The position numbers and the translations under genes were made by a program. DNA of 64,000 nt, taken from Macrostomum hystrix. Lineage: Eukaryota > Animalia > Platyhelminthes. This document shows, one piece after another, positions 37,021-52,649 of this stretch. Below the pieces are notes generated by a model, which was not told the origin of the DNA, ran no database searches, and saw only the letters and a program-made list of their open reading frames with translations. Every line of letters begins with the position of its first letter. Position 1 is the first letter of the stretch. The stretch spans positions 2,542,001 through 2,606,000 of the forward strand of contig CATNEN010000011.1 of assembly GCA_950097015.1 (NCBI GenBank), written 5' to 3'.

Positions 37021-37988
37021 TTATTCCATCTTGACGCCTCTGGCCGCCCACGCCTGACGATTCTTCTGCACAATGCGCTCCAGTAGGTCGCGAAACGCCT
37101 TGTCCACACCTTCGCCAGTGGCCGCCGATGTCTCGTAGACTTTGAGCTTGTGCTTGGCTGCTGCTTTTGCCGCGTCGGCTGGTGTTACCTGGACAAAAGT
37201 TAGTTAGTAAATTACACGTAATAGTAATAAAAAATTACACCTGCCCAAATTGGGCCCGACATGTTGCGGGGCGCCTCTGAAAAAAGCGTACGAACAGTCG
37301 TTCAGTCCATGGACTGGTGGGATGCCACACCCAGCCTTAACTACCCCAGCTGATGTTGGTACTCATTTAACAGCTGGGTGAACTCAGAGTAAAGTGGCTT
37401 TCTAAAGGACACAAATTGTTCCAGTAGAATCAAGAATCGAACCCCCGACCTTCAAGTCGCTCTAACCACTAGGCTACAACTCCAAATCGAGTATTTACGC
37501 CTGCATCTATAACTGGTAACCTGTCTTTTCTCCTTGAGATCGGATTTGTTGGCTAACAGAATGATTTCCGGCATCGTAGATGGCTGCTGCTGCTGCTGCT
37601 GCTGCTGCTGCCCTGGCCCAGTGCAGTACTGGGCAATCTCTCGCATCCAAGCGTCTAGATTCGACACCGATTTTGAGTCGGTCAGATCCAGGGTGAGCAG
37701 GATTCCGTCGCTCCCAGCGTACAGTTCGTTGCGAACCTCCACATACTCAGGATAGCCGGACAGGTCCCACAGGTTGACGCGTAGGTCAACGCCGTCAACT
37801 CTGAACACCTTGAAGCCGTAGTCTGCGCCCACCGTTGGCTGGTAACCTGGCGAGAAGCGGCTGTCGCAGAAGTGTTTGATTAGGCACGTCTTGCCGGAGC
37901 CGGGGTAACCAGCTGACACCAGCTTGACCCAGGCTAAACAGCTGGTGAAGTCGGGCAAATCTTGCTGCGTCGACAAATCTCTGCTCAT
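37021..37988 (-). CDS. RJL-family small GTPase (DNAJC27/RBJ-like, no J domain). Exons 37988-37521, 37188-37021
   Basis: G1 GYPGSGKT, then CLIKHFC..RF, G2 PTVGADYG, G3 WDLSGY, EVRNELY (RJL-like), G4 NKSD and G5 ETSA. Exon 2 reads VTPADAAKAAAKHKLKVYETSAATGEGVDKAFRDLLERIVQKNRQAWAARGVKME*. Confidence 0.78.
37240..37480 (-). mobile_element. SINE family 1 copy in the RJL intron
   Basis: gaatcgaacccccgaccttcaagtcg, cagctgggtgaact and acacctgcccaaattggg match the family. Confidence 0.8.
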
Positions 37989-38329
37989 CTCTGCTCATTC
38001 GAGGTTTGTTGCTGCTAAGAAAGGCTTAACAACTGCATGGCTCACTTAGAGAAAGCGAGTTATTTAGAGAGAACAATGAGACTGTCTTGAGCTGCGTGCC
38101 TAAATAATCTTGAATTGAACGCTAGTGAGTGTACATCAGCTAGATTTCCTACAAATGTATAACAATCTGTGCACTGAAACTGTGCAAAGCTCGAAAGGTT
38201 TTTAGTCCGAGTATTTTGTGTCTCTAACTTATGAGTTGCTAAGTCTATAACTGTACACGTTGGTCTGAAGTATACGCAAAATTAGGAGTAGAATTTTACC
38301 TGAATTGTGTGTCAAGATGTGGTGAGTTT

Positions 38330-39996: not shown

Positions 39997-42900
39997 TCAT
40001 CCTTTGAATACATCCGGAGCCGAGAACAGAATGGCGCAGGTTGCGATGACGGTGAAGCAGGAGAACAGGATGAGGCACAGCCGGTCCACAACTCTGGCTG
40101 CGAACTTCCACTCGCTGCTTACTTCACCGTCGGCAACGTCGTCTGAAATTTTCTGCGTTATGATGCGCAACTCGTGCACAATGGACTCCAGGTCGCTGCG
40201 GACACTGCAGGGCTGCTGTTGTAGTAGAAACTGGCCATTCGGATGCTGCTGCTGCTGCTGCTGCTGCTGTTGTTGCTGCACGTCGTCATAAACTGGCGGC
40301 AGTCTGGAAGTGGCCGCCGCAGCCGCGGCTCGGAAATTGTCCTCCAAATCCAGGACGTTCGCCAGCAGCGACTTCGACGATCGTTCGCGCAGTTCCAGCG
40401 GCGCCGCGTGCTCCGCGGCCAGCAGCTCCCGGTGATGCTCGGCGAAACCGGAGGCTGCCGAGGCGCTGGAGCGGAAGGCGCCCATCTTTGAGCCACCGCC
40501 GCCGCCACCTGCGGCGAAACTGCTGCGAGTTCGGCGACGTCGCAATCGTATCGGCTCAGCGTCTTCGTCTCTACGCAGCCGGCGCATGCAGAGAATGCTG
40601 GCCAGATAGGTGCAAATGAACTGACGGACCTGCAGATTGGGTTGGACACAGCACCTGTTAGACAGGAGCCCTACCTGTTAAACAGGATCCCTACCTGTTA
40701 GACAGGAACCCTACCTGTTAGTCAAGCACTCTACTTGTTATACAGGTGTTAGGCTAACGACTAAGTTAAGAATGTCACGTGTTAGACAAGTACTTTTAGT
40801 AATTTTTAGGAGGTGTTTTATTATTGACTCACCCAGTTAGGAATGGGGTGTGATTCAGCATCCCTGTGATGATAATTGAGCACAATGACAGTGAAGACAA
40901 CCGATAAGCTGCACATGATCATTGTGCAAGCAAAGTACATGCCTGAAATTTTCAAAGGATTCGAAATATTTCTTTAATTTGATACCATAGTGATCGATTT
41001 GATAATAAGGCGATAAAATCTGCTTAGTAAAAGTACAATGATGTTCAATTACTAACCAACATTATTCTAGGACACTTTTGTAGGAAAACGCATTTCATGG
41101 TACTTTCAGTAGATGTCCGTTGTTAAATATTAAAACAAGAAAATAATGAAGTTTTAAGATCGTAAATTCAACACGAGTATAGGGAGTGTCTGAAATGGCT
41201 GGTAGGCCATGGTGTCGTGCTTGGCCAGGTACCGCTAGCCAATTAGGACCTCAGAGAACTATGTTACTTAGAAAAGGTTTCGGAGGCTGGCTTCGCTGAA
41301 AACGGCGCTACGGAGATAAACTTATATTTTTGGAAGTTTATTCAAAGCTCTTTTTCTGTGTAACTAACCCAAAATGTTGCTCCGATAAATTTTACAAAGA
41401 TTTCAGCTTTTAAAGTTTATCTTTATACTATCTTATTCTTTACTAACGGTAGGACTACCAAGCCATGTTGCCGCCCGTTTTAATACCAGGTCGAATTCCC
41501 CCCTGAAGTTATTTTTGGCAGCGGCTGAATGGTAACAGCGTTGAGTGGTGTCTAATTGGTTGACAGACTAGCCGATGGTGTCCTGTGGTTGAGCTGAGCC
41601 TAGTATTTAGGTTTGATCAGTGAAATGGGAGACATTCGCGTCAGGGTGTCCATAGTGCCTAGTTCAGTTCCATCTGTTGTAGCCTTTGGAGGTCCAGCAA
41701 ATCCGTCTAGATAAAGGTAGGTGACCACCGAAGACGGAGATGATGCAGGCACATTCGGGTGCCATGCTAATCAATTTTGAAGGCCTGGCAAGGCCGCACT
41801 GAGGCGCAGTGCTAATTCGTGTATAGGGGTGTATGAAATACATAAGCGCTTATAGGAAAAATCTGACCTTAGGCCAGAACGATTGAATGTCTCGACGGTC
41901 TTGAAATAGTTGTTTTTATAAATTAAGCTTGATAAAAAGCTAATACAATCAAATAAAGTCGCGAAATTTGTCCCAGAAAGATCGTGTAAATTTTTTAATT
42001 CCCGTAGTGCATTTTCGGCGAAAATAAACCAGCCTCTTAAACTTTTCTAAGAAACATCGATTTCCCGTTCCGACCAATTTTAAAAAATGCTAAAGCGGAT
42101 TTTGCTCACCGATCACTGGTACAGAGTCTGAGGTAGGCGGCATGGCCTCAGCAACCATCATTAGAAAAACGGTCAACGATAGTAGGATAGTCACACCTGC
42201 GTCGCGTTAACAATCAAAATAATTTTCTACATTTGACCCGTCACAATTTGTTATAATTCCATTAATGAACACCGGAAATTGTGGACCAGCGAGCAAGCGA
42301 CAACAAAAAAACGAAAAAAACAAAAAAACAAAAAAGTAAATACAACACCGAAAATTTCACCTTAATTCTCGCGTGTAAAAATGCATTCCAGCAAGGTTCT
42401 TACCAATGAGAGGCAGAGCCTCAGATGTCTGCGGCATTGCGTCCGCCACGAGCAGTAAAAACATGGTCAGCGATAGCAGAATTGTGACGCCTGCGTCGAA
42501 ATTTAGTTAATTGTGCTTTGTGCGTTGTGCGTTGTGTAATGAGTTCAATTTTATCTTAGCGAAACATTCTGAGGAGGTTCAGTTTCTGGTTTGAGTTTCC
42601 TAGAAACATGCAATTTTTTAAAAATTTCTGCCGTTTTAAAACTCAAGCCCGTTTTTCCTTCTACTGATTCGAGAAAATTTCGCTGTTGCTTCATTCTATC
42701 CCTTATCTAATCTCTCGCCGTTGCTTCATTCTATCCCTTATCAAATCTCTCGCCATTGCTTCATTCTATCCCTTATCAAATCTCTAGCCGTTGCTACATT
42801 CTATCCCTTATCCAATCTCTCGCCGTTGCTACATTCTATCCCTTATCTAATCTCTCGCCGTTGCTTCATTCTATCCCTTATCAAATCTCTCGCCGTTGCT

Positions 42901-45900
42901 TCATTCTATCCCTTATCAAATCTCTCGCCATTGCTTCATTCTATCCCTTATCAAATCTCTAGCCGTTGCTACATTCTATCCCTTATCCAATCTCTCGCCG
43001 TTGCTACATTCTATCCCTTATCTAATCTCTCGCCGTTTCTTCATTCTATCCCTTATCCAATCTCTCGCCGTTGCTTCATTCTATCCCTTATCAAATCTCT
43101 AGCCGTTGCTACATTCTATCCCTTATCCAATCTCTCGCCGTTGCTACATTCTATCCCTTATCTAATCTCTCGCCGTTTCTTCATTCTATCCCTTATCAAA
43201 TCTCTAGCCGTTGCTACATTCTATCCCTTATCCAATCTCTCGCCGTTGCTACATTCTATCCCTTATCTAATCTCTCGCCGTTTCTTCATTCTATCCCTTA
43301 TCAAATCTCTCGCCGTTGCTACATTCTATCCCTTATCTAATCTCTCGCCGTTGCTACACTCTATCCCTTATCAAATCTCTCGCCGTTGCTACATTCTATC
43401 CCTTATCAAATCTCTCGCCGTTGCTACATTCTATCCCTTATCTAATCTCTCGCCGTTGCTACATTCTATCCCTTATCTAATCTCTCGCCGTTGCTACATT
43501 CTATCCCTTATCAAATCTCTCGCCGTTGCTACATTCTATCCCTTATCTAATCTCTCGCCGTTTCTTCATTCTATCCCTTATCAAATCTCTAGCCGTTGCT
43601 ACATTCTATCCCTTATCTAATCTCTCGCCGTTGCTACATTCTATCCCTTATCTAATCTCTCGCCGTTGCTACATTCTATCCCTTATCAAATCTCTCGCCG
43701 TTGCTACATTCTATCCCTTATCTAATCTCTCGCCGTTGCTACATTCTATCCCTTATCAAATCTCTCGCCGTTGCTTCATTCTATCCCTTATCCAATCTCT
43801 CGCCGTTGCTACATTCTATCCCTTATCAAATCTCTCGCCGTTGCTTCATTCTATCCCTTATCAAATCTCTCGCCGTTGCTTCATTTTATCCCTTATCAAA
43901 TCTCTCGCCGTTGATTCATTCTATCCCTTATCAAATCTCTCACCGTTGCTCCATTCTATCCCTTATCCAATCTCTCGCCGTTGTTTTATTATTTTTCTTA
44001 TCCAATCTCTCGCCGTTGCTTTATTATTTTTCTTATCCAATCTCTCGCCGTTGCTTTATTATTTTTCTTATCCAATCTCTCGCCGTTGCTTCATTCTATC
44101 CCTTATCCAATCTCTTCCCGTTGCTTTATTATTTTTCTTATCCAATCTCTCGCCGTTGCTTCATTCTATCCATTATCCAATCCCTCGCCGTGGGATATTT
44201 TCTTTAATTTTTTAGTAAGCTTGGCGCGAAGTTTAAGCTGCAATATCAGCGATCAGTTATAGTCAGTGGATTATATCGAATATGCATTGTATTTTTGGTA
44301 TGATTGCGCATTTAAAAAATATAGTTGTGAAAAAATTCCAGAAGAGGTTGTAGCCTAGTGGTTAGGGCGTCGGACTCACGACTTGAAGGTCGGGGGTTCG
44401 ATTCCCGACTCCACTGGAACAATTTGCGTCCTTTAGCAAGACACTTAACTCTGCATTGCTTCAGTTCACCCAGCTGTTAAATGAGTACCAGCATCAGCTG
44501 GGATAATTGAAGGTGGGTGTGGCGTCCCCCCAGTCCGTGGACTGAACAGCTGTACGCAGCCTTCAGATGCGCCGCGCATTAGCTGCGGCTGTGCTGTCGG
44601 CTGCACATCTGACCCAATTGGGGCAGGTGTAATCAATTATTATCAATTATTATTATTGTATGCAAGCATTGAAATTGGTGATACCAGTTGCTAACTGTTT
44701 TTGTTTTACTGGCCCGTAGATTAAAACAGTCTGGAAAACGATTTACTGTCGCCATTGTTAATATAATTCAAGTAATAACAGCTGGAAAGGGGTAGGCTTA
44801 TATGCTTGATTAATACTCTTTAGGTTTAGTTTATTTATTAAGTCATCGTAGAGTAAAGTCCTAATGAAATTACTGCACTTATCTAATAGATAATGCGACT
44901 ACACGATTTCAAAGAGGCAAAATTTCTGTCTAACAGGTCAGTATCCATATCTAACAGGTCAGTATCCATATCTAACAGGTCAGTTCCCATATCTAACAGG
45001 TCAGTATCCATATCTAGCAGGTCAGAACCCATATCTAACAGGTCAGTATCCATATCTAGAAGGTCAGAACCCATATCTAATAGGTCAGTATCCATATCTA
45101 ACAGGTCAGAACCCATATCTAACAGGTCAGTATCCATATCTAGAAGGTCAGAACCCATATCTAACAGGTCAGTATCCATATCTAACAGGTCAGTATCCAT
45201 ATCTAACAGGTCAGAACCCATATCTAGCAGGTCAGTGTCCATATCTAACAGGTCAGTATCCATATCTAACAGGTCAGTATCCATATCTAACAGGTCAGTG
45301 TCCATATCTAACAGGTCAGAACCCATATCTAGCAGGTCAGTGTCCATATCTAACAGGTCAGAACACATATCTAACAGGTCAGTGTCCATATCTAACAGGT
45401 CAGTGTCCATATCTAACAGGTCAGTATCCATATCTAACAGGTCAGTGTCCATATCTAACAGGTCAGTGTCCATATCTAACAGGTCAGTATCCATATCTAA
45501 CAGGTCAGTATCCATATCTAACAGGTCAGTGTCCATATCTAACAGGTCAGTATCCATATCTAACAGGTCAGTATCCATATCTAACAGGTCAGTATCCATA
45601 TCTAACAGGTCAGTATCCATATCTAACAGGTCAGTGTCCATATCTAACAGGTCAGTATCCATATCTAACAGGTCAGTATCCATATCTAACAGGTCAGCAT
45701 CCATATCTAGCAGGTCAGTATCCATATCTAGCAGGTCAGAACCCATATCTAACAGGTCAGTATCCATATCTAACAGGTCAGAACCCATATCTAGCAGGTC
45801 AGTGTCCATATCTGACTGGTTTTTATGTTCATTATGTTGCGTCATTGCGGTAAATCACAGGCACAATACAACAACCGCCTCACCTAGCGATATCTTCTCT

Positions 45901-48900
45901 CCAGCATCCGGTGGCAGCATGAAAGTTAGCAGGGCCATAGATGAGATCAGAACGCATGGAATGATGAGGTTGAAGCCGTAGTACAGCGTCCTCCGGCGTA
46001 TCTTGATCCAGTACTTCAGATCGACGAATGGAAACGGACAGCAGTCGTACACTAAGGCGGTTCTAATTCCGGGCATTCCTGAGATAAACAAATGTTTTTT
46101 ATCTGCGTAATTTATGATGCACATACAAATTTGACAATTCATTTATTCCAGAAAGTCAGCTTTGACCCCTGTTCCTTCAGGAAGTCCGGTTTCATCCCCT
46201 GTTCCTTCAGGAAGTCTGGTTTCATCCCCTGTTCCTTCAGGAAGTCCGGTTTCATCCCCTGTTCCTTCAGGAAGTCCGGTTTCATCCCCTGTTCCTTCAG
46301 GGAGTCTGGTTTCATCCCCTGTTCCTTCAGGAAGTCTGGTTTCATCCCCTGTTCATTCAGGAAGTCCGGTTTCATCCACTGTTCCTTCAGGAAGTCGGAA
46401 GTCTGGTTTCATCCCCTATTCATTCAGGAAGTCCGGTTTCATCCCCTGTTCCTTCAGGAAGTCTGGTTTCATCCCCTGTTCCTTCAGGAAGTCTGGTTTC
46501 ATCCTCTGTGCCTTCAGGAAGTCGGAAGTCTGGTTTCATCCCCTATTCATTCAGGAAGTCCGGTTTCATCCCCTGTTCCTTCAGGAAGTCTGGTTTCATC
46601 CCCTGTTCATTCAGGAAGTCCGGTTTCATCCCCTGTTCCTTCAGGAAGTCTGCTTTCATCCCCTGTTCATTCAGGAAGTCTGGTTTCATCCCCTGTGCCT
46701 TCAGGAAGTCCGGTTTCATCCCCTGTTCATTCAGGAAGTCCGGTTTCATCCCCTGTTCCTTCAGGAAGTCTGGTTTCATCCCCTGTTCCTTCAGGAAGTC
46801 TGCTTTCATCCCCTGTTCCTTCAGGAAATATGGTTTCATCCCCTGTTCCTTCAGGAAGTCTGGTTTCATTCCCTGTTCCGTCAGGATGTCTGGTTTCATC
46901 TCCTGTTCCTTCAGGAAGTCCGGTTTCATCCCCTGTTCCTTCAGGAAGTCTGCTTTCATCCCCTGTTCCTTCAGGAAGTCCGGTTTCATCCCCTGTTCCT
47001 TCAGGAAGTCCGGTTTCATCCCCTGTTCCTTCAGGAAGTCCGGTTTCATCCCCTGTTCCTTCAGGAAGTCCGGTTTCATCCCCTGTTCCTTCAGGAAGTC
47101 CGGTTTCATCCCCTGTTCCTTCAGGGAGTCTGGTTTCATCCCCTGTTCCTTCAGGAAGTCTGGTTTCATCCCCTGTTCATTCAGGAAGTCCGGTTTCATC
47201 CACTGTTCCTTCAGGAAGTCGGAAGTCTGGTTTCATCCCCTATTCATTCAGGAAGTCCGGTTTCATCCCCTGTTCCGTCAGGATGTCTGGTTTCATCCCC
47301 TGTTCCTTCAGGAAGTCTGGTTTCATTCTTTGTTCCTTCAGGAAGTCTGGTTTCATTCTTTGTTCCTTCAGGAAGTCTGGTTTCATTCTTTGTTCCTTCA
47401 GGAAGTCTGGTTTCATCCCCTGTTCCTTCAGGAAGTCTGGTTTCATCCCCTGTTCCTTCAGGAAGTCTGGTTTCATCCCCTGTTCATTCAGGAAGTCTGG
47501 TTTCATCCCCTGTTCCGTCAGGATGTCTGGTTTCATCCCCTGTGCCTTCAGGAAGTCTGCTTTCATCCCCTGTTCCTTCAGGAAGTCTGGTTTCATTCCC
47601 TGTTCCTTCAGGAAGTCTGCTTTCATCCCCTGTTCCTTCAGGAAGTCTGGTTTCATCCCCTGTTCCTTCAGGAAGTCTGGTTTCATCCCCTGTTCCTTCA
47701 GGAAGTCTGGTTTCATTCCCTGTTCCTTCAGGAAGTCTGCTTTCATCCCCTGTTCCTTCAGGAAGTCTGCTTTCATCCCCTGTTCCTTCAGGAAGTCTGG
47801 TTTCATCCCCTGTTCCTTCAGGAAGTCTGGTTTCATCCCCTGTTCCTTCAGGAAGTCTGCTTTCATTCCCTGTTCCTTCAGGAAGTCTGGTTTCATCCCC
47901 TGTTCCTTCAGGAAGTCTGCTTTCATCCCCTGTTCCTTCAGGAAGTCCGGTTTCATCCCCTGTTCCTTCAGGAAGTCTGGTTTCATCCCCTGTTCCTTCA
48001 GGAAGTCCGGTTTCATCCCCTGTTCCTTCAGGAAGTCTGGTTTCATCCCCTGTTCCTTCAGGAAGTCTGGTTTCATCCCCTGTTCCTTCAGGAAGTCTGG
48101 TTTCATCCCCTGTTCCTTCAGGATGTCTGGTTTCATTCCCTGTTCCTTCAGGAAATATGGTTTCATCCCCTGTTCCTTCAGGAAATGATATTTAAACTGC
48201 GTTTTTTATATTAAAACTAAAATTATCCCTATGTTAATGTTAATTAATGTTATTAACAATTAACAAACGGTTTTCGAATCGATAATCAATACTTCTTCAA
48301 AAGAGTTATCGGTAATATATATAGTGTAATTTGTGTACGGGTGCTGTCTGTGTGCTTGTGTCGTATTTTCATTGATATTCGCTCAGGCGCTTAAGTTGAA
48401 TAATAATTTTGTGTCCTCAAATCGGTGACATTTTTGCTGCTGGAACGCTTTTGTGGTGCGACAAGACCGGAAAAATAATGAATTTTTTCTTTCTTAGAAA
48501 TTTCTGATTCAATTTTTAACAAATTTCGTGCTACGAGTAGTAACATCAAGCAACAATTAACTAATTAAAAGAAATATGTTTAAATATTGACGTATTCTAT
48601 TTAGCAATTTTTCCAGAATAGATGAATATATAAAAATATATGAAAACCATAAAAAAGTAAAAAGACTAACATTTAAGAAAGTAACGAAGTTTTGGAAAAA
48701 GTAACTTTTTTCAATATTTTAAATATTTCACTTATTTCACTTATTTTGTGCAAGCCGTGGAGTATAAAATATTTTACGCATATGCGACAGAAGTAGCTTT
48801 GCTTGCCGTCCATAATTTCCCGACTTTTGTTATAATTAAATCGCTTAATTATAACAAAACAATTTGAAACGAATCTGCCGCATACCAAAGCTAACTTTCT

Positions 48901-51900
48901 CTCCAGCATCCGGTGGAATGATGAAGCTTAACAAAGCTAAAGACGACAGAAACGAGCACGGACCAACCAGATTAAATACGTAATACAGCTTGCGCCTACG
49001 GATGAGCAGGTGAAATTTTAAATCGATGAACGGATGGGGACAGCAGTCGTAGATGATGCTGGTTCGGATCCCGGGCAGTCCTGCAAGCGTGTGGTGTCAA
49101 ACTGTTGTTGAGTCTATAGCGTAAAAAATTGATAATTTCTGGCATCTTTTCTTGACGTCAGCATCGTCGTCGAGATTCAGCGATTCATTCAGAAAAATGA
49201 AAAATGTGAAAAATTTGACATAGCCCGTGATCTTTCTACAGTTCAGCTGATGTTCTAGATGACACCTACCTGTAGTCCATGAAGTTGGGCCAGACTTACA
49301 GGCAGTGGCACAACTGCTGCTATTACAAATTTGTTTCCAAACCTGGTGTACAACCGTTCAGTCCATGGACTGGGGGGCTGCAACATCGACCCAAATTTTA
49401 CAGCTAAAAAATGTTGAATACAAGAAAAAGGTTAAGAGATTTTCTCTGCTACGCCACGTACCCAACACCCAATAATCCCAGCTAATGCTGGCACCCGTTT
49501 ATCAGCTGGGTGAACTGAATCAATGCAGAGTTAAGTGTCTTGCTAAATGGCACAAATTGTTTCAGTCGAGTCGGGAATCGAACCCTTGACCTTCAAGTCC
49601 GACGCCCTAACCACCTGGGTTTTTTAAATAGGCATTTGAGCAGGAACTTACCCTCTAGATTCCATTCGCCACTCTCAACGTAGGTGGTGACATCTCCTGA
49701 GCCCTTCTCAGAGCAGCCCTCCGGGTCCTGCAGGATCTTCTCAGTCGTATCCAAGCTGGCGTTGTCGCATTTGAATCTCAAATCAACTGTGCCGCCATCG
49801 TATGACCAAGAGCCGAATTTCAATTCGCACTTTTGCGTATCAAATGGAAACCAGGTAATATCTATTTTGCAGGTAGATTTGAACATTCCAGGCGGTATGT
49901 AGTTCATTGAACCCGAGTGATTTATGACCACATTAGTCGGGAATGTGCCATCGAATTTCTCATCGGCACTGGAAGTTTGAAAAGCAATTTGTTGACTAAT
50001 TCTCAGTTTTAATTACGCGCGTATTTCGATTAAATTATTAGATTACTACTTTAAGTAGCGCAACTCGCCTATTGTAAAGTAGAATGTCAGGTTTCCAAAC
50101 GCGACTCGGATCGATATTAATCTTCGTGATGTTGCCATATTCAGCTGGATTCCATTTGAAATGATAGTCGCTCCACGTCTGGAATTTTAAATAAACGTTT
50201 ATTGCTCTTGTCTTTCATTACATCTGTTATTTTTAGTTGTGTCATTTTTATTTCCAGATCTAACAAGATGCTTTATGCACATGCGTTCGCGTACATCTTA
50301 CGCTGTACGTAACAGATGCTATTTTTAGTAACAGGACAACCGTGCCTAGGGTCCTCCTCTGAGTCATCTGACGTCATATTCTATTTTTAGAAAATGTGTT
50401 GCCTTATGTAATGAACGAATATTTTAGGTTGAGTTTATGTGCTTTGTGTAAGATTTCTGCTACGTCTGCAGCAGTAAGCTGTGCTTAAACTTCAGGTAGG
50501 TGAAATTAGCTCAAAAATACTTATTGAACACATAAACATTACTGTCTGACCATGAATCGAAGGAAAAAAATAATAACGCTAAGCAAACATTAGATCCGAG
50601 CCACTCTGCATAATTTAGGCTTGCTGAAGCTCAAGAAAGGCCAACATTAATTGAGTCTGATCAAACATTATATCAGCTGTGTAGTCGATAAGTATTAGTA
50701 CTCAGGAGGCAGCTCACCAGATCCAGCCAGATGTTTGAGAACAGAATCTGGTTCTTTTCGTCCTGCATAAAAATGGGAAGCGGGAGTTTACAGATGGGAT
50801 CATTTTGCATTAGATTTACATGATTAACGCAAGTCAGTAATTCAGTCAATCACTGTAAGCATTATCAGTTTATGCTATACAAAGCCCAGAAAGCATGTTT
50901 TGATTCAGTATTTTTCTGCTAGCATTTCTTCCAACTAACTACGAGCTAAAAAAGCAAATAAATGATTTGACTAAAGTTTGATATGGCATTCATTTCTGTT
51001 CTCTCGTATGCTTTGCACCAGCTTGTGAACCATTGCTACAAAAGTTACGAGTATGTTACACCAATGGTTTAGCTGAGGCATTCATGCAAAACAGATTGAG
51101 TTGGCAGTGATTCCTTCAGCAAACTGTTCCATACCATTGCTCAAATGCACAGCTGACTGGAAAAGTATTTCTTAGTAAGATTTATTGGATAGCAAAAATT
51201 TGGATTAAAGAAACCAGCTGTTACTCGTACATATACTTTCACGTTTCAGAACTTTCAAAAAACTAAATTTTTGTTAGATAAACCGAAAAATAATTAAAAC
51301 GAATCGAGTTAATACGAAATTGTGTTACTAAGAACTGGATTCTTCTAAAAGCGCAATGTTTCTACGAACTGGATTCTTCTAAAAGCGCAATGTTTCTAAG
51401 AACTGGAGCTTCTAAAAGCGCAATGTTTCTAAGAACTGGATTCTTCTAAAAGCGCAATGTTTCTAAGAACTGGATTCTTCTAAAAGCGCAATGTTTCTAA
51501 GAACTGGATTCTTCTAAAAGCGCAATGTTTCTAAGAACTGGATTCTTCTAAAAGCGCAATGTTTCTAAGAACTGGATTCTTCTAAAAGCGCAATGTTTCT
51601 AAGAACTGGAGCTTCTAAAAGCGCAATGTTTCTAAGAACTGGATTCTTCTAAAAGCGCAATGTTTCTAAGAACTGGATTCTTCTAAAAGCGCAATGTTTC
51701 TAAGAACTGGATTCTTCTAAAAGCGCAATGTTTCTAAGAACTGGATTCTTCTAAAAGCGCAATGTTTCTAAGAACTGGATTCTTCTAAAAGCGCAATGTT
51801 TCTAAGAATTGGATTCTTCTAAAAGCGCAATGTTTCTAAGAACTGGATTCTTCTAAAAGCGCAATGTTTCTAAGAACTGGATTCTTCTAAAAGCGCAATG

Positions 51901-52649
51901 TTTCTAAGAAATGGAGCTTCTAACGGCGCAATGTTTCTAAGAACTGGATTCTTCTAAAAGCGCAATGTTTCTAAGAACTGGATTCTTCTAAAAGCGCAAT
52001 GTTTCTAAGAACTGGATTCTTCTAAAGCGCAATGTTTCTAAGAACTGGATTCTTCTAAAAGCGCAATGTTTCTACGAACTGGATTCTTCTATAAAAGCGC
52101 AATGTTTATAAGAACTGGATTCTTCTAAAAGCGCAATGTTTCTAAGAACTGGATTCTTCTAAAAGCGCAATGTTTCTAAGAACTGGAGCTTCTAAAAGCG
52201 CAATGTTTCTAAGAAATTGAGCTTCTAACGGCGCAATGTTTCTAAGAATTGGGTTCTTATAAAAGCGCAATATTTGTAAAAATTCAACTGAGAGTAGAAA
52301 CCAATAGTCACTCATTTAACTTAGCCCAGCTCAGATCGAGTATAATTCTAAGGTTGAGCACACTCACAACGTCGATAATCTGCTGCAGAGACACCTTGAA
52401 CCAGACGTAGAGCACAGCCGAATCGTTCTCAACCGGTCGCTCCATCGGGTTGTGCTTCTTGTTCTCGTCCTTGTTCTCGAATAGTTCCCGAAGGAGTCGC
52501 TTCTCGTGCCTGCCAGCCAGGGCGCCTTCGCGGATTATTGTGAATTGGGGGCTAAATTGATTGGCATAGTTTACTTGGAGAATCACGGCTGAGGTACGTG
52601 ACAGCACCAGCTCAGAGATAATCAATGATGGGCCAAGTAAGCCTTGCAT
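39997..52649 (-). CDS. Nicotinic acetylcholine receptor alpha subunit, alpha7 type. Exons about 52649-52368, 50762-50718, 50178-50069, 49968-49652, [49080-48886 or 46078-45884], [42490-42404 or 42196-42110], 40942-40833, 40629-39997
   Basis: Motifs [30 protein letters not shown], Cys-loop [15 protein letters not shown], loop B WSY, vicinal CC, GEK ring and TM4 [13 protein letters not shown]. Exon sizes 45/110/195/87/110 match the CHRNA7-type structure. The signal-peptide junction is uncertain. Confidence 0.93.
40650..40745. repeat. Five-copy 20-bp repeat (acctgttagacaggagccct) in the last nAChR intron
   Basis: acctgttag-like units at 40654, 40674, 40694, 40714 and 40734. Confidence 0.75.
41452..41905. 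mobile_element. Truncated inverted copy of the 33212-33803 element in an nAChR intron
   Basis: Begins TA|ggactaccaag and is colinear in reverse complement with about 33345-33803. Confidence 0.75.
42110..42196 (-). CDS. nAChR alternative TM2 exon 8b (87 nt): [29 protein letters not shown]
   Basis: cgacgcag|GT ... ATCG|gtgag, phase 1-1, open frame. Confidence 0.9.
42404..42490 (-). CDS. nAChR alternative TM2 exon 8a (87 nt): [29 protein letters not shown]
   Basis: cgacgcag|GC ... ATTG|gtaag, phase 1-1, open frame. Confidence 0.85.
42680..44180. repeat. 35-bp minisatellite (tctcgccgttgcttcattctatcccttatcaaatc) between exons 7b and 8a
   Basis: Direct periodicity, decaying toward 44180. Confidence 0.96.
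44345..44655 (+). mobile_element. Full-length SINE family 1 copy with (ATT)n-like tail
   Basis: gttgtagcctagtggttagggcgtcggactcacgacttgaaggtcgggggttcgattccc head, followed by the CORE-like block and tail. Confidence 0.92.
44930..45815. repeat. 21-bp minisatellite (tccatatctaacaggtcagta) just downstream of exon 7b
   Basis: Direct periodicity, about 42 copies. Confidence 0.97.
45884..46078 (-). CDS. nAChR alternative exon 7b (195 nt; loop C, TM1, M1-M2 linker): [65 protein letters not shown]
   Basis: tctcag|GA ... CTAG|gtgag, phase 1-1. Confidence 0.92.
46165..48185. repeat. 30-bp minisatellite (ttcaggaagtctggtttcatcccctgttcc), about 67 copies, between exons 7a and 7b
   Basis: Direct periodicity. 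Confidence 0.97.
48886..49080 (-). CDS. nAChR alternative exon 7a (195 nt): [65 protein letters not shown]
   Basis: ttgcag|GA ... TTTG|gtatg, phase 1-1, no stops. It is absent from the ORF track because it lacks a start codon. Confidence 0.85.
49355..49613 (-). mobile_element. Diverged SINE family 1 copy upstream of exon 7a
   Basis: cagctgggtgaactgaatcaatgcagagttaagtgtcttgc...gggaatcgaaccc matches the family. Confidence 0.8.
51330..52265. repeat. 34-bp minisatellite (aagaactggattcttctaaaagcgcaatgtttct), nAChR intron
   Basis: Direct periodicity. Confidence 0.96.

Follow-up and report, generated by a model that had tools for sequence, protein, structure and literature searches.

The window analyzed here, a stretch of 64,000 nucleotides (nt) from the free-living flatworm Macrostomum hystrix (contig CATNEN010000011.1, positions 2,542,001 to 2,606,000), carries on its minus strand a gene that, judged by its exons, encodes an alpha7-type subunit of the nicotinic acetylcholine receptor (nAChR). 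Within this gene, the exon for the pore-lining second transmembrane helix (M2 or TM2, from position 4' onward) and for the M2-M3 loop is present in two tandem copies, 8a and 8b. We find that the pair is real and well conserved and counts as a flatworm case of the alternative pore exons known from insect nAChR alpha6, and that the copies are most likely used one at a time, which would give two variants of the channel.

The receptor gene and its two copies of exon 8

The gene model (Table 1) was built from stop-to-stop reading of the minus strand, inspection of splice sites and Pfam matches, with homology searches made exon by exon. Its exon pieces match PF02931 (82.5 and 40.2 bits) and PF02932 (positions 1-29, 30-58, 61-95 and 150-232), and they bear the marks of an alpha subunit, namely a Cys-loop (C-x13-C) in exon 5/6 and the vicinal cysteines of loop C (YDCC) in both exon 7a and exon 7b. 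Over its whole length, exon 7b aligns with residues 178-241 of human alpha7 (E 1e-21 vs 1.6e-13 for alpha3), and exon 8b reaches E 9e-8 against human alpha7 vs 6e-4 against other subunits; measured in this way, the gene is nearer to alpha7 than to other nicotinic subunits, with human alpha7 as its best solved relative. The nearest proteins are “alpha-7” entries of Macrostomum lignano, which share 89% identity over exon 5/6. The exon sizes of 110, 195, 87 and 110 nt are also those of exons 4, 7, 8 and 9 of CHRNA7. A search of the host gene for a second copy of exon 3 or exon 4 found none. The M2 helix is built jointly by two cassettes, with exon 7 supplying positions -1' to 3' (GEKVSF in 7a vs GEKISL in 7b) and either copy of exon 8 continuing from there.

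Table 1. Features of the alpha7-type nAChR gene, in order of transcription (window coordinates)
Feature	Positions	Strand	Length and content	Match or evidence
Exon 2	about 52311-52460	minus		
Exon 3	about 50721-50765	minus	45 nt, loop D	
Exon 4	50069-50178	minus	110 nt, contains WKPDILLYN, GC donor	Pfam
Exon 5/6 (fused)	49652-49968	minus	317 nt, Cys-loop and family-specific insert	PF02931, 82.5 bits
Exon 7a	48886-49080	minus	195 nt, alternative loop C, transmembrane helix 1 (TM1), M2 start (GEKVSF)	
Exon 7b	45884-46078	minus	195 nt, loop C (YDCC), TM1, M2 -1' to 3' (GEKISL), canonical type	
Exon 8a	42404-42490	minus	87 nt, phase 1 to phase 1	PF02932 positions 30-58, 30.8 bits
Intron 8a-8b	42197-42403	minus	207 nt, GT-AG ends (U2-type)	
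T-rich tract	42295-42342	minus	62-109 nt after the 8a donor	sequence only
Exon 8b	42110-42196	minus	87 nt, phase 1 to phase 1	PF02932 positions 30-58, 29.3 bits
Exon 9	40833-40942	minus	110 nt, TM3	Pfam; exon 9-10 splice in RNA
Exon 10, coding part	39997-40629	minus	intracellular loop, TM4, stop at 39997-39999	PF02932 positions 149-232

Exons 8a and 8b both open within a Gly codon, of which they take in the last two bases, and close after the first base of the codon that follows; the PF02932 scores of both exceed the curated cut-off. Since they match the identical stretch of this domain, a chance likeness is set aside, and the two exons represent one receptor segment present twice; in the terms used for alternative exons, they are tandem homologs of equal length and phase, each with its own splice sites. 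The best explanation is that 8a and 8b arose by tandem duplication of exon 8, an ancient 87-nt exon of alpha7-type genes. Re-reading of the minus strand returned exactly the two peptides given by a first-pass annotation of the locus, with 9 of 29 residues differing (DNA identity 68%) at 13', 16', 17' and 20' and at five positions of the M2-M3 loop. We fixed the prime numbering by aligning 8b to human alpha7 residues 242-270, which places L247 at 9'; this leucine is unchanged in both exons, and the alignment confirmed the earlier assignment of M/V to 13', LL/MM to 16'-17' and D/E to 20'. Exon 8a carries M13', LL at 16'/17', D20', Q24' and E27', a derived flatworm type, and exon 8b carries V13', MM at 16'/17', E20', P24' and D27', a canonical-like type.

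The acceptor cgacgcag/G is common to both exons, and their donors read G/gtaaga (8a) and G/gtgagc (8b). The shared acceptors without a polypyrimidine tract had been singled out in the first-pass annotation, and both traits are indeed present; however, the acceptors of 7a and exon 10 and most acceptors of the paralogs described below are without such a tract, too, so that its weakness is not peculiar to 8a and 8b, and the octamer is not kept in the paralogs.

Exon 8 copies across Macrostomum paralogs

A six-frame search of the genome returned four further alpha7-like paralogs, on contigs C7, C24, C39 and C37, for a total of five. In tblastn searches with the exon peptides, a pair ordered 8a then 8b was also found in the C24, C39 and C37 paralogs, every copy bounded by AG and GT, so that four paralogs of one genome, the host gene included, carry it; the C7 paralog has one 7b-type and one 8a-type exon. 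Wherever the pair occurs, the upstream copy is of the 8a type (M13', LL at 16'/17', D20' and PQTSE) and the downstream copy is of the 8b type (V13', MM, E20' and P[PA]TSD). Protein identity between paralogs amounts to 76-93% for 8a-type and 83-97% for 8b-type exons, compared with 52-72% between 8a and 8b, and because same-type exons of different paralogs are more alike than the two types are to each other, the duplication of exon 8 is, by this comparison, older than the gene duplications. There was no sign of gene conversion between the 8a and 8b types.

Silent sites are nearly saturated among same-type exons of the paralogs (proportion of silent differences, pS, 0.45-0.88), with a proportion of amino acid-changing differences (pN) of only 0.02-0.17. 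The 8b exon of the host gene differs from the paralog 8b exons by pN 0.02-0.05 and pS 0.64-0.88, and 8a differs from 8b within the host gene by pS 0.70 and pN 0.17. Given a pS near saturation together with low pN, both exon types are old and constrained by long-term purifying selection. This bears out the earlier view of the two exons as intact alternatives for one receptor segment; the pN/pS comparison indicates purifying selection on both.

The annotated proteins of M. lignano agree with the existence of both exon types. Model P0003 is the ortholog of the host gene; its 8a amino acids are identical, and it runs from 8a to exon 9 without 8b. Two clean single-copy models, which belong to two different paralogs, join 7b, 8a and exon 9 (P0292) and 7a, 8b and exon 9 (P0294). 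Models P0289, P0290, P0291 and P0308 read through both exon 8 copies in tandem, and in P0290, P0291 and P0308 a spurious peptide that matches no receptor segment stands between one TM2 copy and the other. These read-through models are predictor artefacts, yet they show that the exons exist. When spliced Macrostomum transcript fragments were sought in a protein collection with exon 7b, the search returned only arthropod genomic exon fragments of at most 73% identity.

Exon use and splice choice

RNA holding the host gene came from three small runs of one study, with a gene coverage of about 3x. The junction between exons 9 and 10 (40629/40833, GT..AG, minus strand) was found in RNA contigs of two runs, X1 and X2, and one sense contig of 121 nt (X1 record 7) contains all of 8a. 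The first 27 letters of this contig do not match the genomic sequence upstream of 8a, and the 8a acceptor is therefore used; the possibility that 8a is never spliced, named in the first-pass annotation as a way for its reading to fail, is thereby set aside as far as the acceptor goes. Directly before 8a, the contig reads AG, which fits the end of 7b (...CTAG) and not that of 7a (...TTTG).

In the scheme that we favor, one of 8a and 8b would be spliced into each mRNA to give two subunit variants, because the subunit has room for one M2 helix and both exons have long been kept intact. Several observations weigh against it. In the three runs, no read or contig covers 8b, none spans the junction of 8a with exon 9 or with 8b, and the 8a contig ends in gtaag, the first five nt of the downstream intron, so that use of the 8a donor is not captured. 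Nonsense-mediated decay was considered as an enforcer of single inclusion and rejected, since each exon is 87 nt long and in frame. Selection was measured across paralogs, and a recent loss of 8b use in the host gene would stay invisible to it. The Drosophila alpha6 cDNA variant type V (P0395), which has two tandem exon 8 copies, tells us that such cassettes can be leaky. Finally, the sequence does not allow one to predict how the channel is affected by the exchanges of LL to MM and of D to E, both of them conservative.

Two other patterns of exon use have to be weighed against single inclusion. That the host gene uses 8a alone, with 8b a silent relic, a chance-kept pseudo-exon or an exon recently lost from use, seems improbable to us. 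The RNA contigs, in which 8a only is seen, would fit such a state, as would the M. lignano ortholog model P0003 with its direct step from 8a to exon 9 and the presence of the 8a type alone in the C7 paralog and in all Neodermata genes examined. Yet 8b is intact with a proper AG and GT, and its very low pN beside high pS to the paralog 8b exons is hard to reconcile with a relic, which at that age would have decayed; the P0294 model of M. lignano uses an 8b-type exon in a paralog, and the absence of 8b from the RNA says little because the gene coverage is only about 3x. A pattern in which both exons are commonly included or both skipped, with non-conducting or regulatory subunits as the products, is in our judgment very unlikely. 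Both outcomes would keep the reading frame (87 is divisible by 3), and proteins with a double TM2 do exist in the databases besides the Drosophila type V variant, but most of these are automatic gene models, among them the three with the spurious linker peptide. Furthermore, a subunit with two M2 segments would have inverted topology after M2, and the strong selection on the pore residues of each exon fits use as a pore.

As to how single inclusion of 8a or 8b might be enforced, the length of the intron between them was given correctly in the first-pass annotation, but an intron of 207 nt does not in itself argue against steric exclusion, as had been concluded there, since the decisive measure is how far the branch point lies from the 5' splice site. 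Exons 2 and 3 of rat alpha-tropomyosin are mutually exclusive for steric reasons by way of a distal branch point. In the flatworm gene, branch-point-like motifs lie just upstream of the T-rich tract that follows the 8a donor (uuuuAcac with the A at +28 and uauuuAcu with the A at +67), and the 8b acceptor is without a pyrimidine tract. It is possible that a distal branch point near the 8a donor serves the 8b acceptor and that splicing of 8a to 8b is thereby blocked. The layout resembles that of alpha-tropomyosin in an intron of about 200 nt with a long pyrimidine-rich tract near the upstream donor and far from the downstream acceptor. Unlike there, the branch point here is only a candidate read from the sequence, and the T-rich tract is not clearly kept in the paralogs, whose 8a-8b introns measure 432-749 nt and have no common layout.

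Incompatible spliceosomes were rejected, as all donors and acceptors are GT-AG and of the U2 type. No support was found for competing RNA structures with docking and selector sites: inverted repeats in 40900-42720 occur at chance level (three perfect 10-mers vs about 1.6 expected by estimate), the paralogs lack an equivalent of the single repeat reaching into 8a (42480-42489 with 42239-42248), the acceptor octamer cgacgcag is neither enriched (10 matches vs 5.8 expected) nor matched by a complementary stretch in the pre-mRNA, and the local fold is no more stable than that of shuffled sequence (z +1.18).

Together with the 7a/7b pair, a choice at exon 8 could yield up to four different subunits. 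It is doubtful, though worth noting, that the cassettes are chosen together, 7b with 8a and 7a with 8b, giving two co-adapted TM1/M2 modules and not four combinations. Hints of such coupling come from the M. lignano models P0292 (7b and 8a) and P0294 (7a and 8b), from the AG before 8a in the RNA contig, and from the C7 paralog and the gene of the trematode Paragonimus, both of which have a 7b-type and an 8a-type exon. Under coupled choice, a splice from 7a to 8b would take out 7b and 8a as one intron, and the single-exon paralog and all parasitic flatworms would have fixed one of the two modules, that of 7b and 8a.

Pore variants, insect alpha6 and the origin of the pair

Work on alpha7 has shown that residues L247, V251, L254 and L255 affect desensitization, that E237, L254 and L255 affect Ca2+ permeability, and that a stretch of ten residues matters for modulation by PNU-120596 (PMC4959957). 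The first-pass annotation had held that 8a and 8b differ at positions governing desensitization and Ca2+ permeability of alpha7, and the same source bears this out. The type-defining differences at 13', 16'/17' and 20' and in the PNU-120596 stretch are fixed across the paralogs, and because they fall on these alpha7 positions, it is a reasonable inference that 8a and 8b act as a switch in gating kinetics, permeation or modulation. With one copy spliced into each mRNA, the two subunit variants would differ in the upper pore (13', 16', 17' and 20') and in the loop by which binding is coupled to gating.

Alternative pore exons in alpha7-like receptors are, to our knowledge, textbook matter for insect alpha6, the target of spinosad, only, and a literature search returned no paper describing tandem exon copies of alpha7-like genes for flatworms. 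In vertebrate CHRNA7 (human alpha7; PDB 7KOO and 8UT1), exon 8 is single and constitutive, and the human protein has V13', LL and E20' and shares 21 of 29 residues with 8b and 19 of 29 with 8a. The closest parallel to the flatworm pair is the set of exons 8a, 8b and 8c of insect nAChR alpha6 (Drosophila Dalpha6 and its orthologs; Jin et al. 2007, PMC1919356), in which the same orthologous 87-nt exon has been duplicated with equal phase and boundaries. In both cases, an alpha7-like subunit has its M2 helix and M2-M3 loop encoded in tandem copies that keep the 9' Leu and vary the upper pore and loop. In contrast to insect alpha6, there are two copies here and not three, the variant copy lies upstream and not downstream, the pair occurs in four paralogs of one genome, it stands directly after a 7a/7b cassette that is absent from alpha6, and exon 3 of the flatworm gene is single where alpha6 has 3a and 3b. 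Mutual exclusion in insect alpha6 has been demonstrated by reverse transcription PCR (RT-PCR), whereas exclusivity in the flatworm is a probable reading of gene anatomy and conservation.

To place the pair more broadly, homologous loci of a louse, a wasp, a spider, annelids, a nemertean, a brachiopod, a gastropod and a trematode were scanned with the same exon peptides (Table 2). The boundaries of exon 8 and its length of 87 nt are identical in all of these loci, which argues that the exon duplicated in the flatworm and in insects is one orthologous exon. Tandem copies of exon 8 were not found in four other spiralian loci, namely those of the annelids Capitella and Owenia, the nemertean Lineus and the brachiopod Lingula. 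The spider locus stops short of exon 9 and is uninformative about a second exon 8 there. Two or more TM2 copies of various types are also found in database models from a barnacle, a tick and a spider and from alpha7-like genes of insects.

Table 2. Exon copies counted at alpha7-like loci of other animals
Locus	Exon 3	Exon 4	Exon 7	Exon 8
Louse alpha6 (L015)			1	3 (8a, 8b, 8c; all 87 nt, same boundaries)
Capitella	2	1	2	1
Owenia	1	1	2	1
Lineus	2	2	2	1
Lingula	1	1	2	1
Gigantopelta (gastropod)	2	1 full and partial repeats	1	2 (variant first)
Paragonimus (trematode)	not matched	1	1	1 (8a type)

These counts suggest that the alpha7-like genes of protostomes vary in which of exons 3, 4, 7 and 8 they hold in tandem copies. 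In flatworms, Capitella, Owenia and Lineus, the 7b type is preceded by a 7a-type copy (RRRKLYY... and GEK[VL][ST][FC]G), and on this distribution the 7a/7b cassette appears to be pan-spiralian and to predate the pair at exon 8. The loop-D exon 3 (45 nt) is doubled in two of the M. hystrix paralogs (C24:4958229-4959222 and C39:13206061-13207293), as it is in insect alpha6. In Gigantopelta aegis, the end of exon 4 (RxWKPDILMYNR) is repeated in the intron that follows it (L023 16220-17242), as about 25 partial copies in tandem. Alpha7-like models of hemimetabolous insects that do not belong to alpha6 (P0295-P0297, P0304, P0306, P0310, P0328 and P0333) apparently have exon 7 in duplicate and TM2 exons of three or four types, arranged as canonical, QVSD type, PQTSEA type; the arrangement parallels that of 8a, 8b and 8c in alpha6 and suggests that the insect cassette predates the split of alpha6 and alpha7.

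The peptide of exon 8 is identical in the spider, Capitella and Lineus and presumably represents the ancestral protostome state. From this shared peptide, the 8b exons differ at 3-7 positions across the paralogs (5 in the host gene) and the 8a exons at 6-9, so that 8b has stayed near the presumed ancestral sequence and 8a, the more distant one, is the derived copy. The derived type is also that of the parasitic flatworms examined. The alpha7-like nAChR of neodermatans (Schistosoma mansoni V9TII8) has an 8a-type TM2 with M13', D20', Q24' and E27', and an invariant 8a-type TM2 peptide is present in 18 of 19 trematode sequences and in one cestode, with Paragonimus differing at one residue. At the Paragonimus locus, both exon 7 and exon 8 are single, and unlike in the flatworm host gene, no 8b-type alternative was found there.

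Whether the resemblance to insect alpha6 is convergent, as the first-pass annotation had proposed, is a matter on which the distribution of the pair and the exon tree part ways. We consider it probable that exon 8 was duplicated independently in flatworms and insects, in line with the single exon 8 of Capitella, Owenia, Lineus and Lingula and with the reversed order of the copies (variant exon upstream in flatworms, downstream in insects); variants in the gastropod, tick, spider and barnacle are of yet other types and point to repeated duplication. A less likely history, to be held tentatively, is that the pair was already present in the protostome ancestor, with 8a orthologous to the insect 8c type, and was lost in annelids, nemerteans and brachiopods. 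In a maximum-likelihood tree of 42 TM2 exon peptides, the flatworm 8a clade indeed joins insect alpha6 8c and the insect alpha7-like variant (support 94/91), and flatworm 8a and the insect 8c type have the derived states D20', Q24' and partly E27' in common (ADA-PQTSEA-PL). Old cassettes do persist in this gene, as seen from 7a/7b in flatworms, annelids and the nemertean and from the two exon 7 copies of the brachiopod, and tandem exon 8 copies are present in a gastropod, too. However, the tree has just 29 columns and its grouping could equally stem from functional convergence, and in an approximately unbiased (AU) test, a clade holding only the flatworm 8a and 8b exons is not rejected (p 0.29), so that neither history is rejected. 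If the origins were independent, the same three substitutions would have arisen twice, which would itself be of interest.

With the M. hystrix gene, the exon known for its copies in insect alpha6 is seen duplicated and retained in a free-living flatworm, and in four paralogs at once. Its derived 8a type is the sole pore exon of schistosomes, liver flukes and one tapeworm. The gene thereby sets the two pore types side by side on a single genetic background, a natural setting in which the parasite-type pore could be probed for Ca2+ permeability, desensitization and drug modulation.

A few further features of the locus lie outside the exon pair. The intron after exon 4 opens with GC (window 50067-50068, minus strand; AG/gcgagt) and is a GC-AG intron. 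The introns around 7b and 8a (42554-44250, 44886-45854 and 46142-48205) consist mostly of long minisatellite arrays with units of about 35 nt, 21 nt (MDTDLLD in one frame) and 30 nt. Within the intron between 8b and exon 9, about 480 nt at 41428-41907 are matched by RNA contigs that are 90-95% alike, at a depth of 190-1900; this segment looks like an abundant transcribed repeat family, and an Rfam search with it matched no family. Downstream of the receptor gene, at 37455-37994 on the minus strand, lies what, read by eye only, looks like an exon of a Rab-type GTPase, DNAJC27/RBJ-like and with a poly-Q insert.

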